DNA from: Syncephalis fuscata S228
Lineage: Eukaryota; Fungi; Zoopagomycota
Length of the DNA: 64,000 nt
Reading direction: 5' to 3'
Assembly (NCBI GenBank): GCA_025786725.1
Contig: JAHLTZ010000005.1
Coordinates: 744,001-808,000, forward strand
This document shows, one piece after another, positions 12,770-45,080 of this stretch. The position numbers and the translations under genes were made by a program. Under the pieces are notes generated by a model, which did not search any database, was not told the DNA's origin, and saw nothing but the letters and a program-made list of their open reading frames with translations. Each line of letters begins with the position of its first letter. Position 1 is the first letter of the stretch.

Positions 12770-13510
12770 TCTTTTATTTACTCATTTCACCATTTTTCTT
12801 ATTACTATCTTATATTCTTTTTATATATTCTATTTAGTAATATATTATCCGATAATGCCAAATATAACAATATAAATAACATGTGTATTTGAACATCAAT
12901 AAAAACACTATTCAATTCCTAGTCCTTATTTCTCTTATTTTACACTAACATCTCTTCAAGTAACCTCAACGGCATGCCGTATATTCTGGTTACAACTGTC
13001 GCCCCAAGATCTTTCTGGTGAAGATACTCAACCTATCATTATTGAATAAGATAAAGGCCATCTGTTTCATCAATGTCGGCAAAGCATCTGCGTCTACAAG
13101 TTGATACCAAGAGTGCTTAAGACAATGGTGAACATCAGAAATGCTGATCGTCCTACCTTCTTGTCGCCATAAACGAGTATTTACATCGTAAATCTGCCAT
13201 AATACAATATTAGAAAATCAAAAAATAAAAGAGATCATTTAGACGCAAGAAACCACATTGTTGTAGTGACAGCAATAACAACAGCGGAACGACATGGAAT
13301 TGCGATCAATGGCTTTTATTAATATTCTATCAATTTTTCTACGCATAGCCAACAACAATGATTGGTCTCGTGAATTTCAAAGTAGTCAAATGGAAACATT
13401 ATGGCTATGTTTCTTGTACATAATAGTATTGATTTCAATTGAAGCCAATTTTGCTTTAAGATCCAAATTATGAGAGTCAAAGTAAAATTGAGAAATTTTG
13501 AAAGGCTAAA
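12770..13510. repeat. Dispersed repeat family, copy A
   Basis: High identity to 19650-20410 and 36890-37720 (e.g. gtaacctcaacggcatgccgtat...tctgcgtctacaagttgataccaaga...caatggtgaacatcagaaatgct). Confidence 0.9.
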
Positions 13511-15092
13511 CATGCCTGATAAAAAAAGTTAATTACAATAAATACAACAATGTTAATTTGAAGCTTTGTTTACATAATTCAATTAGTTATAGTAATATCA
13601 ACAGCAATTCCAACCGTGTTTTATTTGTCAAAAAGACTCCCAACAATATACTGGCGGCAAATGCAACTTAAAAAATATAATACAAGAATAGGTTCTGTAA
13701 GGATTATTATTAATAATATTGAACTAGTAGCTAATACTTAAATAAACGTTTATTGAAAAACAAAAACAAACTACTAATGAAGCAACTATCAAAATAAATA
13801 AAGTGTAATGCAAATAAAAACGATTTAATTAACAAATAGTTTTAAAATTTAAATTTAACCAACAAATAAAACTAGTTTGGCTTATTTAGAGTGTTTTATG
13901 TGTTAGATTTAACAATTAAACAATTCTGAATTACATGAAAGTACTATTGCTTTAAGTAACTTGAGTTAATTAGCTGGTGTATCAAACAAGAGTGAAGATA
14001 TGCAAAATAATGCCGTCAACATGGAATTTGTCATTGATAAACTAGAACAATCTACTCGTAACATTCATTTTTAAACATCGCAGTAGTCGCTCCAGTGTTC
14101 TAATTTAAAAAGTTGTGGAACATGGCGAAAGAAGCTTAAAAGGGTGCTGTGACGAATCATTTAAACCGCTTGATTTGTATTAAATCTTATGATATTTTTA
14201 TTAACTAAATAAAGATAACTTTTCCACAATATTAAGCACGCTATTGGTTGTTTGATGTGATTTGGCAGTTAAATAGCTATAATAGTCACACATTTAAACG
14301 GAGTATCCGCTTTATTGAAGATGAAACTGGCTGTTGAGTGTCATTGATCATTGAACTATTTACTTATCATTATTATTGTACTGTACATATCTATCCTTTA
14401 TACATATACTATATGTCCGTCTATATCATTAATATTGTAAATTGCAAAAACTATATTAATAAAAGCTAAAAGTTTATTGCTAACTGTATTCTTTTAGCAG
14501 ATTTTGATCCATTCCGTTCATTGCTCTTGGCTAATTGCATACAGTATAGTTTTGTTATTACTATTCACGTATTCGTTTTGTCTATTTATTTTGTTTTATA
14601 ATATCGTATGCTTTATTGCCATGTTTTATTAAAAAGCTTCTTTATTCTAATTTCAGCATAATATTGTTTGGCTATATGATAATGATAGCTTTGCTACTAT
14701 CCATACCAATCTATGCCTATAGCTTAGGCGATATAATTATACACATTTTGTTATTAATTTAACTATTTGATTGATAATTGTCATTATTGAATGCAAATAG
14801 AACATGATTAAAGATATAGTAAATTGATTGTATATAGCTAAGATGGAACCATAGTTTTATTACTATAAGCTTGCACAGTTGAATAGAAGCAACTAAATGC
14901 AAGCTTGTTAATAAAATAATGATTCCATTGATTAGAGACTGGATAAACCGGAGCATTGGCCAAAACTTGATATATGGATAGACAGGACGGCGTAGTTGTC
15001 AAATGATCTTGCTTTTCACCGAATATATACCTAAAGTGTATTGGAATAGTGGTTTGGTTGCACTATCAATGCTGATGTCTTGAAACCATCGA

Positions 15093-17870
15093 TTATGCTG
15101 TATTTACAAATAAAGATATTATATGTTATATGATTAATTTATACTCTATCAATATATAATGTTACTTACGGCCTATTAATAGTAAGTTGTTGATACACAT
15201 GGTGCATAACATGTGATTAGTAAGTAATCAATTAACATACAATACAACTTACATGAGCCTAAGGTTGATTTATTGGTGAATACAGTACATGGTATATATA
15301 ATTAATGTATCGTCAATTAATATACAATACTAATTACCCTCTATTAATATTAAATAATCAGTACAATTAACAAATAGCATAGTTAATGTATAGTCAATTA
15401 ATATACAATATCGCTTACTCTCTATTAATATTAAATAATTGATACAATTGGTAAATAGTATAATTAATGAATAATCAGTTAATATACATTAACTCTTACT
15501 TTCTATTAATATTAAATTATTGATGTACATGGTACACGATATATAATTAGTTAATAGTCAATTAATATACAATACTACTTACTGCCTATTATATTAAGTT
15601 GTTGGCGCACATAGTGCATTGTATACAATTAGTGAATAATCATTAACATACAATACAACTTACAATCTATTAATGTTAAACAATCAGTACAATCAGTAAA
15701 TAGCACAGTTAGCGTATAACCAAATATAATATACAATATCACTTACAATCTATTAATATTAAATAATCAATACAATCAGTAAATAGTATAATTAATGTAT
15801 AATCAAATAATACACAATACAACTTACCCACTATTGATATTAAATAAGTACAATTAGTAAATATTATAGTTAATATCACTACCGCTTACCGCCTGTTAAT
15901 ATTAAATAATTGATACAATCAGTAAATAGTATAGTTAATGTATAGTCAAGGGATATACAATACAACTTACGACCTATTAATATTAAATAATTGGTACAAT
16001 CAGTAAATAGTATAGTTAATGTATAGTCAATAATATAAAATATTACTTACAATCTATTAATAGTAAATAATTATACAATCAGTAAATAACATAGTTAATG
16101 TATAGTCAACTAATATAAATATACTTACAGACTATTAATATTAAATAATCTACAATCAGTAAATAGTATATTAATGTATAGTCAATTAATATACAATACA
16201 ACTTACCTTCTATTAATATTAAATAATTGCTACAATCAGTAAATATCATAGTTAATATCACTACCGCTTACCGCCTATTAATATTAATAATCAATACAAT
16301 CAGTAAATAGCACGGTTAATATATATTAGTTAATATAATATCACTTACTAGCTATTAATATTAAATAATTAATACAATCAGTAAATAGCACAGTTAATGT
16401 ATAGCCAGATAATATAAATACAACTACCACTATTGATATTAAATAATCGGTGCAATCAGTAAATAATATAGTTGATATGTAATAACTATAATATCACTTA
16501 CGCTCTATTAATATTAAACATTGGTACAATCAGTAAATAGTATATTTGATATATAATGATTATAATATCACTTACGCTCTATTAATATTAAATAATTGGT
16601 ACAATCAGTAAATAGCATAATTAATATATGGTTAGTTAATATGCAACACCACTTACCCCCTATTAATATTAAATAATTGGTATCATTAGTAAATAGCATA
16701 GTTATTTATAGTGAGTTAATATGCAATGTTACTTACTAACTATTCCAGCAGTTATTGATGCACAATGCATGACACAATTAATTTATAAGCCAGCACATAC
16801 AATGCTACTTACTGCCTATTAATATTAGGTTATTGATATACATAATATAATTAATGTATAAACTACCAATATACAATGCTACTTACAAGCTATTAATATT
16901 TGTTGATACACACAATACATAAATATAATCAGTGAGTAATTAGTTCATATACAATACAACTTACCAGCTATTGCATTGAATTGTTGATACACATAGTACA
17001 TTATGTATAATTAGTTCATAGTCAGTTAATATGTAATGTTTCTTACCAACTATTCCATCAGGTTATTGACATACAATGAATGACACATAATTAATACATA
17101 ATTAGCTAATATGCAATGCTACTTACTGCCTATTATTATTAAGTCATTATACACAATACACGATATGTAATTAGTCAATGCTCAATTGATATACAATATA
17201 ACTTACAATCTATTAATATTAAGTTGTTGACATACACGGCGCATGGTATAAAATTAACGTATAGTCATTTAATACACACTACACTTTACCCTCTATGTCA
17301 TTAAGTTGTTGATACATACAATACATGATATAATTGATTTATAAGTTATTAATATACAATATCACTTACTGCCTATTAGTATTAGGTCATTGATACAGTG
17401 CATAACATGCAATTAGTAAGTAATCAATTAATATACAATACAACTTACATTGCTCTAATATTAAGTTATTGATGGATGTAGTGCATGACACATAATTAGT
17501 GTATCTCTATTGATATGCAATACAACCTACTAGCTATTAATATTAGTTTATTGATAAACACAGTGCATATCATGTAATTAGTAAGTAATTGATTAATATA
17601 CAATACAACTCACATAGTTCTAATATTAAGTTGTTGATGAATACAGTACATGATACATAATTAGTGAGTAGTTGGTTAATATGCAATATCACTTACGACC
17701 TATTATAATCATTAGTTAAAAATACTATTAGTAAACATAATTCGATAATATATTTGTTAATACTGCAACATACCACCACGACGAACTAAAGTTGGTTTAG
17801 CATCCACCATGGATGTACTGGCCACAATAGCCACGACAATGGTGCAAACGGCGGCAATAGAAAGCTTCAT
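15093..17870 (-). CDS. Micro-exon gene encoding a 69-aa secreted six-cysteine peptide precursor (35 exons: leader, 33 micro-exons, terminal)
   Basis: Exon 1 (17870-17774) encodes MKLSIAAVCTIVVAIVASTSMVDAKPTLVRRG plus 1 nt, followed by a GTATGT donor. Each repeat unit on + reads cttac-NNN-ctatt, i.e. on - acceptor AG / exon / donor GTAAG. Concatenated exons give GQLSKQCKDCIAACIREQLASEVYCRVDYCKKKGSCP and stop TAA at 15095-15093. One unit (16428) needs 1 base restored. Confidence 0.9.
15098..17773. repeat. Tandem array of ~34 related introns (unit 62-85 bp, mostly ~80)
   Basis: Approximate consensus (+): ctattaatattaaataattggtacaatcagtaaatagtatagttaatgtatagtcaattaatatacaatacaacttac, separated by variable 3- or 6-nt spacers. 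Confidence 0.95.
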
Positions 17871-18246
17871 GGTGATATTGATTTGTTAAGACAAACAAAT
17901 AAAAGAGATAGTAGAGTGTGGTTGGTATAGAATGGAGAGTAGTGCGTGTATAGCAAGAAGTAGAGTGTGATAATGATATTCTAGTTGGTTGTGTATATTT
18001 TGTGGGCTATTTATACTTATGATTATGCTGAGATGCCAGTATACTGTAGTATATGAGGTACAACATTGATGTGTAGTATAACCAATAAAGCAATCCAAAT
18101 AATGATTTGAGGTCCGCGTGTACCAATAGATTGATGACATGATAAAACACCCCAATTTTGATTTCAACCTGCTCGGCATTTACACAGATAACGCGGCAAT
18201 TCCAATGAGCAGTACATATGCGATAGAAACATGTACATTATTCTGC

Positions 18247-18612
18247 ATTTTTTGTTACACAATTTAACTATTTGGTAAAAACAAGTATATTATTTAGTTT
18301 TGTAAAAGCGATAGTAATGTCTTTGCCGCCATTTCTACCGATTCAGTCCTCAATATCTGCATGCATACTAAACAGCACACAACCTGCCCAGTCTTTACTT
18401 CAATCTGTTAGTCATTTGCACGAGTGCTGTAGCGGTGTTATAATCCAGTACATATGATAAAAATAGACATATTCGCCTGTATTTTTGTTACACAGTCTAA
18501 CTATTTGGTAAAAACAAGTATGTTGTTTGGTTTTGTAAACATGGTAAAGACGCCTTTGCTGCCATTTCTACCGATTCGGTCCTCAATATCTGCATGCATA
18601 CTAAACAGCACA
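18247..18612. repeat. ~130-bp direct repeat upstream of the micro-exon gene
   Basis: 18247-18379 matches 18481-18612 (tttttgttacac...aactatttggtaaaaacaagtat...gccatttctaccgattc...ctcaatatctgcatgcatactaaacagcaca). Confidence 0.85.
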
Positions 18613-19649
18613 TAGTACTGGCGCAAAAACAAGTCTAATATATCAAAATAATATTTTTATACACATTTTTACTGCTGTACATAGGTCAGCCATAATTTTT
18701 AAATTATAAAATGTATTGATTGGTACATGTATGCATTTCATTCGACACTATGCCCATTGTTATCGGGTAATCATTGCTTTGAATTCACAATGTATCACAT
18801 CCAGGCATATCATGCCACATGCTGTGCAACTACCATCATTCAAATGACGGCTAATCTAAATTACCTGAAATCAATTATACAATAAGTACTATTTGTAGGG
18901 TGATGCATCATAGCATTTTGAGCAATGGAACATTCCAACAAGTCATTTTCGTCATCAGTTTTCAGGTGTAGACTAAATTGCATCGGCTAGATTGCACACA
19001 ATACAATATGCAGACACTAGACTAAACACAATAGAAAGTTCTGCTCAAATATCAGCAATTTCAAGTGCATAATATCAATGGGCTGCATATCAACCGGTAA
19101 TCATCCAAGGCCTAACTGCTGTCCACATTTCTGAAACCACTTCTGACAAGTCAAGCAAGATGGAATATAGAAAAACAATTAACAGCTCAAAGGCTTACTG
19201 GTTTAACCTATAGCAAATTATTATAGCTATGCTAATATAACTATATTTATCAAAAGTTGACCGTTGCTGATGCAATTAGAACAGCAGCAATATTAAACAG
19301 ATAACGCACAGAAAACAGAGAGCTGTAGATAGAACTAAAGCAATAAGTTTTAGTAATTAAATAACTTATTATTGTCACTATACTTTATAATTCTGGTTGT
19401 TTGTATGAATAAATATTTACAGTCACATTGTAACTTCTTATATACTCACATTTATACAACCACCAACTAAGCCAATTATTATAAGACTTAATCTAATATT
19501 TATCAGAGTAAACAGCTAGTATTATACACTATTGCAATATAAAAACATTTTTTATTTATTGATTATTAATAAAAGTGTATAGCTATATATTAAAATAAAA
19601 CAAAACATCGGATTGAGCGCGCAATATTTATATGGTCAAGTCATTTTTA

Positions 19650-44129: not shown

Positions 44130-45080
44130 TTAAGCATCAAGACTTCTTTTGCTATTTCCGAGTCCCTATAAATTTTAAAGCATTTATAATTTATGCAAAT
44201 ACATCGAGATAGCTATATTATATACTGTTTACATATTAGACAGATTATGACTTACCACTGTTGGCAATTTTACAAATAAAAACATGGAATTTTACTTAAT
44301 TAGTATTTGCTACACATCAAGTACAAAGACTTACCGACTATTATATTGATTTAATAAATATCACTGAATGAGTCGCAAAATATTTGTATATCAGTCTAAC
44401 TTACTCCCTATTATTATCATTGTTAAAAAGCATGTTAAAAGTTAGTAAGTTTATGATAGTCTATTAGTAAATAATGTATCTTACTATCTATTTAGTTAAT
44501 ACACCAAATGGGCATTAGCAAGCAACATATAGTGGTTAGTTTTAATTAAGTGCTGGAAGGCGTGATTTACTATCTAATGGAATCAATAAACATACGCACA
44601 CACATATATTATTGTTAGTATTTATATAACAGTAATAAGGCACGACTTACTTTTTGTAATAGTTGTCAAATATAACAGTGTCAAGTTATATTTAATTAGC
44701 ATTAGTAAACATAAAAAATTTTCACTTACCATTTATTAATTGTTATTCAACAGATAGCACATTGGCTGTTATTATAAAACAATCCCATGATCGTTTTCCA
44801 AGCTGGAACTTACCAACTATTGGCAGTAAATTATTAAAACGTAGCAAAGCAGAGAACGTATAATGAGTCAACAAATAGCTATCTTTTAGTTACAACTTAC
44901 GTTCTAAAAATCACCCATTCATTAAATAAATAGAGTTTAAATTAGTGTATTGAATATCTAATAGCATTTCAATGTACTTCGGCGATTGAGAACCGGCTTA
45001 GCGTCTGCCATACTAATACTAGTTACAAAAATAACGGCCAAAGCTGCAGTCGCACAAATGGTAGCAATAGAAAGCTTCAT
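44130..45080 (-). CDS. Second micro-exon secreted-peptide gene (paralog of 15093-17870)
   Basis: Exon 1 (45080-44978) encodes MKLSIATICATAALAVIFVTSISMADAKPVLNRR plus 1 nt. Micro-exons follow at ~80-bp spacing (44901, 44814, 44730*, 44651*, 44571, 44485, 44405, 44335, 44256), then a terminal exon 44165-44130. Spliced product KLDENNRIVGLGNSKRSLDA. * marks acceptors that read AA instead of AG. Confidence 0.72.

Follow-up and report, generated by a model that had tools for sequence, protein, structure and literature searches.

How a cysteine-rich peptide can come to be written in pieces of a single codon, each set between introns that resemble one another, is the question raised by a minus-strand gene (17870-15093) of Syncephalis fuscata S228, a zoopagalean mycoparasite. 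The gene lies in a stretch of 64,000 nucleotides (GenBank assembly GCA_025786725.1, contig JAHLTZ010000005.1, positions 744,001 to 808,000 of the forward strand) that is here called the window and to which all coordinates given without a locus name refer. A first-pass annotation of this DNA, made from the letters alone, had drawn attention to a region (15583-17209) that forms the middle part of the array gene and had proposed that its introns record the assembly of the peptide residue by residue through tandem duplication, with the spacing of the cysteines arising from duplicated blocks of four and five intron-plus-exon units. Comparison with paralogs in the S. fuscata genome (loci numbered L029, L055 and so on) indicates that the gene is probably a real member of a family of at least 300 genes for secreted pre-pro-peptides, and that the copying of short patches probably shapes its arrays. 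The proposal of assembly by duplication survives in part: cassettes have been copied within arrays, in patches of one to three units and not as whole blocks.

Organisation of the array gene

The gene starts with an ATG at 17870 and consists of a signal/pro-peptide exon, 34 introns, 33 micro-exons and a last exon that bears the stop. Exon 1 (17774-17870, minus strand) is 97 nt long and ends in phase 1 at a GTATGT donor; the same exon recurs at more than 300 loci. Its product is a signal peptide with a short pro-segment whose last residues are RR; the translation has a hydrophobic core followed by a small-x-small site and then RR, the signal being read directly from the sequence. The array proper (15098-17773, minus strand) comprises the introns, of 59-80 nt, and the micro-exons, which when tabulated show the junction consensus AATAG/NNN/GTAAGT. 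The introns are homologous to one another and measure about 78 nt; like the micro-exons, they are all in phase 1. Thirty of the micro-exons are 3 nt long (one dead unit being counted in) and three 6 nt. In the 6-nt exons (17619-17614, 17454-17449 and 15258-15253, minus strand) the total length equals the 'TAG + 3 nt' of ordinary units, which would fit an acceptor shifted 3 nt upstream. The dead unit (16352-16429, minus strand) has TGG at 16429-16427 followed by TAGTTG, the GT donor having been lost. It is most likely merged into a single 150-nt intron (16501-16352), with the result that one codon is dropped and all six cysteines are retained. The last exon and 3' region (14704-15097, minus strand) carry a TAA at 15095-15093, immediately past the last split codon, and are 86-93% identical across at least 270 loci.

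With splicing as predicted, the coding sequence would be roughly 210 nt long. Read in phase 1, the micro-exons give a peptide of about 36 residues, six of which are cysteine; it contains ...KDCIAACIRE... and ...SEVYCRVDYC... and with them the motifs D-C-I-A / A-C-I-R and S-E-V-Y-C / R-V-D-Y-C to which the first-pass annotation had pointed. The predicted mature cysteine-rich peptide is written one codon per 3-nt exon, between near-consensus splice sites.

A family of micro-exon genes

A strict two-unit pattern gave 2037 matches in the 29.4-Mb assembly and none in the reversed control. More than 320 candidate copies of the 5' part of the gene and more than 270 of the 3' part are present, at 86-92% identity. 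Some 300 genes are thus represented, 21 of which were complete in the sample used here; 20 of these were parsed, and partial loci and three distinct intronless genes were included. The parsing rule took no account of reading frame, and required only a donor-like pentamer together with the most upstream AG within 12 nt. Under this rule the 20 parsed genes yielded 589 micro-exons, with 561 of 3 nt, 24 of 6 nt, four of 2 nt and none of any other length. All four of the 2-nt exons lie in copies that then go out of frame. Dead units are rare by comparison with live ones (7 versus 589). The donor is GTAAGT in 506 cases and GCAAGT, giving GC-AG introns, in 11, and the acceptor is TAG in 576. GCAAGT donors recur at equal positions of the array across several paralogs, examples being intron 9 of L058, intron 2 of L061 and intron 9 of L069. 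In two of the copies with a 2-nt exon (L060 and L073) the reading continues into the phase-0 frame of the last exon instead of terminating; in the window gene this frame (15097-14990, minus strand) is open for about 30 codons (HNRWFQDIS...).

Evidence that the arrays are coding

Over 554 internal introns, conservation is 93-100% at donor positions 1-6 and in the last five positions of the acceptor, while the three exon positions stand at 30-36%. The phase-1 frame, which is set by exon 1, has a cysteine content of 15.9% as against 0.2% and 3.4% in the other two frames. It contains no internal stop in the 14 genes counted as intact, and comparison with shuffled orders of each gene's own exons gives a combined probability of 5e-13 for the open frame. 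The stop falls in the last exon or one codon earlier. The cysteine counts of intact genes are all even (6, 4, 6, 6, 8, 6, 6, 4, 6, 6 and 6). The comparative evidence that these predicted arrays are coding comes from four independent lines (conservation by position, reading frame, placement of the stop and the intronless paralogs treated below) and is strong.

Recurring introns within the array

All 34 introns of the window gene were compared by pairwise global alignment and a maximum-likelihood tree was built of the same 34. The intron variant with an unusual acceptor (ctattcca... on the plus strand), which had been described as recurring four units apart, was found where it had been described and corresponds to introns 9 and 13. 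Intron 9 (17050-17126, minus strand) is of the class termed L, with a 'ggaatag' acceptor; the exon before it is the GCA of Cys 2, and by position this intron corresponds to intron 8 of the paralogs. Intron 13 (16740-16812, minus strand) is a second class-L copy and follows the GCA exon of Cys 3. Both begin with GTAAGTAGCA, and at 79% identity and an offset of four units they are reciprocal best matches. Intron 13 is also 84-86% identical to intron 8 of L060, L058 and L069.

The short introns of about 60 nt, described as recurring five units apart, are introns 20 and 25. The former, with its GCG exon, occupies 16210-16274 (minus strand; intron 16271-16210, 62 nt, with a GTAAGC donor) and the latter, likewise preceded by a GCG exon, 15831-15892 (minus strand; intron 15889-15831, 59 nt). 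They are 90% identical, reciprocal best matches at an offset of five, and sisters in the tree with support of 80/84. They share a 5' end, GTAAGCGGTAGTG, and a deletion, neither of which is present in any paralog examined; the copy is therefore real and specific to the window gene. The next intron shows the same offset, intron 21 (16132-16206, minus strand) being 92% identical to intron 26 (15827-15750), and the exons so enclosed differ (AAG versus TGG). Introns 16 and 17 are neighbours, separated by an AGC exon (16430-16575 in all, minus strand). Each is preceded by an AGC exon, and they are each other's best match and sisters in the tree (support 98/96). The first-pass annotation was thus right to pair these neighbouring units, although at 86% identity its description of them as near-identical is too strong.

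All seven reciprocal-best pairs of introns lie no more than five units apart (offsets 4, 2, 4, 1, 5, 5 and 1), as compared with 28% expected of random pairs. It had also been predicted that an intron tree would contain sister pairs at offsets of four and five units. The only supported sisters are introns 16/17 and 20/25, the second of which is at offset five as expected, whereas introns 9 and 13, at offset four, are not resolved as a pair within the clade, itself well supported, that unites 17 'head and tail' introns.

Origin of the cysteine spacing

The proposal that duplications of four-unit and five-unit blocks within the window gene produced the spacing of the cysteines is not supported. 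At an offset of four, introns 7-11 compared with introns 11-15 show identities of 66, 69, 79, 77 and 71%; at an offset of five, introns 20-24 compared with introns 25-29 show 90, 92, 80, 74 and 80%. Only one of four units is alike in the first case and two of five in the second, so that neither block was seen to be duplicated as a whole. The introns that split the paired cysteine codons, and that would be expected to be copies of one another, differ in class, being D and C at offset four (69% identity) and A and B at offset five (74%), and the paired codons at offset five are TGT and TGC. Nor are the partners uniformly closer to one another than to introns of other genes: the two short introns 20 and 25 are, given a 5' end private to the window gene, but introns 9 and 13 are each 82-86% identical to intron 8 of paralogs as against 79% to one another.

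Much of the sequence concerned is shared by position with paralogs. The second cysteine of the supposed five-unit pair sits within a cassette of the B-F type (intron 28, GCA exon, intron 29; 15503-15663, minus strand) that is 90-91% identical to a cassette of L062/L063 and whose class is unlike that of the intron splitting the preceding cysteine codon. The conserved 'head' of the array, introns 5-12 (16816-17448, minus strand; classes B-C-F-D-L-P-G-C), encodes a Cx2Cx3C core and is collinear with the paralogs. Indeed introns 1-12 of the window gene are collinear with positions 1-11 of paralogs, intron 10 for example being 95% identical to intron 9 of L059, and the supposed four-unit block therefore falls inside a framework that predates the window gene. 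The Cx2Cx3C core is matched position by position in paralogs, intronless ones included, and so is older than the window gene. Across the family as a whole, an excess of identical exon triplets is confined to offsets of one and three and does not extend to four or five. These findings indicate that the six-cysteine framework (Cx2Cx3C followed by three C-terminal cysteines) is probably a family inheritance and not the product of blocks within the window gene. The introns would on this evidence be a record of local patch copying and of the growth of loops, and not of the origin of the cysteine framework.

Cassette copying among paralogs

The 593 introns of the 20 parsed genes were clustered into classes, and these classes align between paralogs. 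The Cx2Cx3C core is specified by the head of the array (classes I, J/G, B, C, F, D, L, P/M and G), the loops correspond to an extended series of class A introns, the 'tail' consists of B-F and related cassettes, and the last intron is of class H. Cysteine codons are split by 40 of the 64 introns of classes B and D, as against 23 of 237 of class A.

Pairs of paralogs differ by insertions and deletions of whole cassettes, and several recent copies can be recognised within single genes. In L063, introns 19-20 and 23-24 (offset four) are 100% and 99% identical, and the copy adds a cysteine (YC/HC) that is not present in the sister copy L062. Introns 10-11 and 23-24 of L056 (offset 13) are 99% identical and encode RC in both places, introns 14-16 and 25-27 of L060 (offset 11) are 95-100% identical and encode DNI in both, and L055 contains a recent copy at an offset of two. 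Recent copies in paralogs are therefore patches of two or three cassettes at any distance (offsets 2, 4, 11 and 13). From these comparisons the copying of cassettes, cysteines included, appears as a genuine mode of change whose unit is a short patch rather than a tandem block equal in length to the offset. Change in short patches is what would be expected of gene conversion or of misaligned recombination between homologous introns. An apparently faster change in exons than in introns (0.28 versus 0.055 per site in matched units) was set aside, as the matching of class A units is unreliable and the cleanest pair, L058 and L069, showed no excess.

Intronless paralogs

Two annotated proteins, KAI9591999 (P0007) and KAI9593080 (P0006), have the signal and pro region of the family followed by six or eight cysteines, and both are encoded without introns. 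Their genes and a further unannotated one (L075:1500-1709, and L078:251-460 and 1500-1733) have the same flanks as the array genes, and P0007 is matched over most of its length, without introns, by at least 18 loci of the genome. The locus of P0007, L075, is homologous to the window at 19223-17775, that is from 1.35 kb 5' of the ATG to the end of exon 1, and the homology resumes exactly at the start of the last exon (15097-14704). The flanks are thus kept and the coding sequence between them is contiguous, which is the precise removal looked for in intron loss mediated by complementary DNA (cDNA).

When the window gene is conceptually spliced, 16 of 17 nt match a contiguous paralog at an equal distance from the pro-site (P=0.006 by codon shuffling); in the genome these 17 nt of the window gene are scattered over six micro-exons and about 480 nt of DNA. 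For spliced L059 the agreement with an intronless paralog is 18 of 19 nt, and a different intronless gene is matched by L058 (z=5.4). At the protein level the comparison of micro-exon peptide and intronless paralog was significant for one pair only, and the nucleotide test is the more informative. The intronless members have diverged from each other, with protein identities of 49-88%. In a tree of the 5' flanks the intronless genes fall outside the micro-exon genes (92/78), while in a tree of the 3' flanks they are nested among them, with the subfamily of L029 outside. Most simply, the intronless paralogs would have arisen by recombination with cDNA, that is by cDNA-mediated intron loss, and they would then constitute a genomic record of the spliced product.

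Searches of Pfam with the intronless paralogs returned nothing above threshold, and protein searches with exon 1 and with P0007 found matches only in S. fuscata (the intronless members and a few models without a cysteine-bearing tail). AlphaFold2, given P0007 and no other input, predicted a helical structure at low confidence (predicted local distance difference test, pLDDT, of 66). The annotated proteins P0004, P0005, P0009, P0013 and P0014 have the family signal peptide and short tails that are not cysteine-rich; they may be gene models of micro-exon genes that continue past exon 1 into an intron.

Proposed mechanism

The pattern of patches suggests that misaligned recombination or gene conversion copies, deletes or overwrites one to three cassettes at a time, misaligned exchange being possible because all of the introns resemble one another. 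Mutation of splice sites would silence single units, and here, as with patch changes, the reading frame would be kept. The recurrence at offset five in the window gene would then represent the copying, specific to this gene, of a patch with two introns (GCG exon, short intron and the intron following), and that at offset four a second class-L intron, copied long ago, after a GCA exon of a cysteine. The cysteine framework would have come from the family ancestor, with differences in spacing between paralogs produced by gain and loss of class A loop cassettes and not by cysteine-bearing blocks of four or five units.

A 3-nt exon cannot be held by two spliceosomes simultaneously, and the introns would for that reason be removed one after another, each removal handing the next intron a normal upstream exon. 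The products would be cut at the RR site to give secreted, disulfide-bonded peptides.

It is possible, though we hold the idea only tentatively, that the layout of one codon per exon is an evolved engine of diversity in which residues are swapped in frame, and that the intronless paralogs are snapshots of reverse-transcribed messenger RNA (mRNA) in which its splicing is archived. Since the introns are all homologous and the exons are symmetric phase-1 triplets, the frame would survive the exchange of residues. Exchange between any two introns, whether within a gene or among the approximately 300 paralogs, could add, delete, move or swap single residues, cysteines included, and the skipping of any exon would have the same in-frame effect.

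Alternative explanations

The most direct alternative is that of the first-pass annotation, namely that two tandem block duplications in the window gene (four units, D-C-I-A to A-C-I-R, and five units, S-E-V-Y-C to R-V-D-Y-C) gave rise to the CxxxC and Cx4C spacings and were later blurred. This could account for the reciprocal-best pairs at offset four (introns 9/13 and 2/6) and five (introns 20/25 and 21/26), for the repetition of exon triplets at the same offsets (GCA/GCA with TTG/TTA, and GCG/GCG with ATT/ATT) and for the existence in paralogs such as L063 of cysteine-bearing copies of two or three cassettes. It is nevertheless unlikely, given how few units of each block are alike, the differing classes and codons (TGT versus TGC) at the cysteines themselves, the sharing by position of the B-F cassette and of the entire head with paralogs, the nucleotide-level homology with which intronless paralogs hold the Cx2Cx3C core, the failure of introns 9 and 13 to pair in the tree and the lack of any family-wide excess of identical exons at either offset. 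A different history starts from a family without introns, in which copies of a single intron then spread through an existing coding sequence to every codon boundary, the likeness of the introns then reflecting insertion and homogenisation and not the addition of residues. The intronless members do exist, are the more diverged from one another and lie outside the micro-exon genes in the 5'-flank tree, and the coding sequences of micro-exon genes, once spliced, show codon-by-codon homology to contiguous ones. Such a spread would, however, require about 30 introns to insert at a spacing of exactly 3 nt and in phase 1 throughout, for which we know of no mechanism. The 3'-flank tree, with L029 outside, gives the opposite nesting, the precise loss of every intron between conserved flanks is the footprint to be expected of cDNA-mediated loss, and paralogs differ by insertion and deletion of whole cassettes. 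This history seems to us rather unlikely.

The recurrences might also reflect constraint, if the intron after a given exon triplet, such as the GCA that precedes a cysteine, needed a particular sequence in order to be spliced beside a 3-nt exon and introns had converged upon it. Intron class does track the split codon, classes B and D going with cysteine and class L always following a GCx exon, and among class A introns the likeness is as great from gene to gene as it is inside one gene. On the other hand cysteine codons are also split by introns of classes A, C, E and K, and the likeness spans the whole 60-80 nt and includes shared deletions and the 5' end private to introns 20 and 25, which indicates descent and not convergence; constraint of this kind is highly unlikely to be the cause. 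It is hardly credible that the array is a non-coding satellite of 78-81 nt within a dispersed repeat and that its peptide is a coincidence. Tandem Repeats Finder does report the array as a tandem repeat, the entire unit, which exceeds 5.5 kb, is present in about 300 repeats and the annotation does not call the micro-exon arrays as genes, but a satellite would not account for three hypervariable bases between invariant splice signals, for spacers that are nearly all 3 or 6 nt long, for open frames enriched in cysteines that are even in number or for contiguous paralogs that match the spliced product.

Several points weigh against the reading preferred here, that of a coding family shaped by patch copying. 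The sample covers 21 of roughly 300 genes, the splicing of the arrays is predicted from comparison of sequences, and the public annotation holds only the intronless members. Class A introns have a mean identity of 83% within genes and 82% between them, and the values of 90-92% found for the five-unit pairs are at about the 95th percentile of this background. Patches and blocks are not fully separable, as duplication of a block and later conversion of three of its units would leave the same picture. The trees of the two flanks disagree as to direction, that is as to whether the intronless genes are derived or ancestral.

Comparison with known gene systems

The micro-exon genes (MEGs) of Schistosoma consist of a signal-peptide exon followed by short symmetric exons of about 6-36 nt, in multiples of three, separated by ordinary and mutually unrelated introns. 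They form lineage-specific, fast-evolving families of proteins secreted by the parasite, and the skipping or addition of exons keeps the frame. The S. fuscata array genes are similar in having a secretion-signal exon 1 and, after it, a series of very short symmetric exons with lengths divisible by three, but differ in that nearly all of the exons are one split codon, in that the introns are tandem copies of a 78-nt sequence, and in belonging to a fungus and being present in about 300 copies. The aphid 'bicycle' effector genes are the subject of an earlier report (10.1101/2021.09.24.461719). The family described here is like them in being a large, fast-diverging secreted family with a cysteine motif that is better recognised by its exon-intron structure than by its sequence, and in having many micro-exons in one phase. 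In the bicycle genes the exons are tens of nucleotides long and the introns are not tandem repeats. Unlike these animal genes, it is fungal and has 3-nt exons and introns that are tandem repeats.

Isolated 3-nt micro-exons, as in RPS24 and cytohesin-1, and the micro-exons of plants are treated in earlier reports (PMC12207440, PMC6314551, PMC8831610), and are a precedent in that they show inclusion of a single 3-nt exon by the spliceosome. Those exons are isolated and have normal flanking exons, whereas S. fuscata has 30-40 in succession that would encode the whole of the mature peptide. In recursive splicing at ratchet points, as in the long introns of Drosophila Ubx, removal is stepwise at a juxtaposed acceptor and donor (AG/GT) and no exon is left. 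By analogy, 3-nt exons would likewise demand ordered, stepwise removal, with the difference that the S. fuscata arrays would keep three coding nucleotides at each step. Introners and introner-like elements of algae and fungi are near-identical introns that have been transposed through unrelated genes. The arrays are comparable in that many near-identical spliceosomal introns in one genome are descended from each other, but the S. fuscata copies lie head to tail in one gene family, 3 or 6 nt apart and in one phase; the matches to the two-unit pattern that were listed are all in tandem arrays, single dispersed copies not having been searched for. The precursors of conotoxin and defensin type, in which variation arises in an ordinary exon, resemble the present family in their conserved signal and pro region, dibasic site, hypervariable mature peptide and conserved cysteine framework. 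No homology of conotoxin or defensin type was found, the Pfam search with the intronless paralogs being empty above threshold.

Full-text literature searches returned no report of 30-40 consecutive single-codon exons with mutually homologous introns in hundreds of copies. The arrays of S. fuscata may be regarded as an extreme form of micro-exon gene, with long runs of single-codon exons that are not known from the MEGs or the bicycle genes. If transcripts were to confirm the predicted splicing, they would set a new lower limit for the density at which a gene can be interrupted and would provide a natural test bed for the way in which the spliceosome handles adjacent introns that share a 3-nt exon. 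They would also represent a route by which disulfide-rich secreted peptides evolve residue by residue and, because only the intronless members are annotated, a large repertoire of secreted peptides in a mycoparasite that has been hidden from standard annotation.

Flanking sequence and divergent members

The repeated unit is larger than the gene. In the window it covers at least 13500-19290, and paralogs align from at least 1.35 kb 5' of the ATG to at least 1.5 kb past the start of the last exon, which is the limit of the flanks compared. No long terminal direct repeats of at least 120 nt were found around the gene. To its 5' side there is a direct duplication of 131 nt at 88% identity (18249-18379 and 18482-18612), in a place where the window has an extra segment of about 240 nt relative to L075. 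A neighbouring open reading frame with an arrestin domain is 96% identical to a protein of S. fuscata.

A second and more divergent member of the family lies on the minus strand at 44170-45080 of the window. It has a related signal/pro-peptide exon 1 ending in NRR, followed by 3-nt exons (AAC, TTG, ATA, ATA, GGA and TCG) between longer and dissimilar introns. Several of its units lack an AG or a GT, and it may be a decaying copy. L029 (G000:C1:573694-576787, minus strand of the locus) represents a divergent subfamily with a related signal exon (MKFSIAVVC...). It has about 15 micro-exons of 3 nt, far more diverged introns and no cysteine in phase 1, and the stop is again at the start of the last exon. 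As L029 shares the architecture and yet is diverged, this architecture would predate the burst of copies that are about 90% identical.

Nine of the 20 paralogs carry an insert of about 400 nt that resembles a short interspersed element (SINE). It is found in L065 (1419-1814 of that locus) and at the same site in L056, L058, L062, L066, L067, L071, L072 and L074. ARAGORN recognised no tRNA in this insert. The insert lies antisense to the gene and combines a tail rich in A and T with a target-site duplication of 16 nt and a motif resembling box B. It always stands directly past GTATATTA near the 5' end of an intron, so that a 78-nt intron becomes one of about 490 nt.

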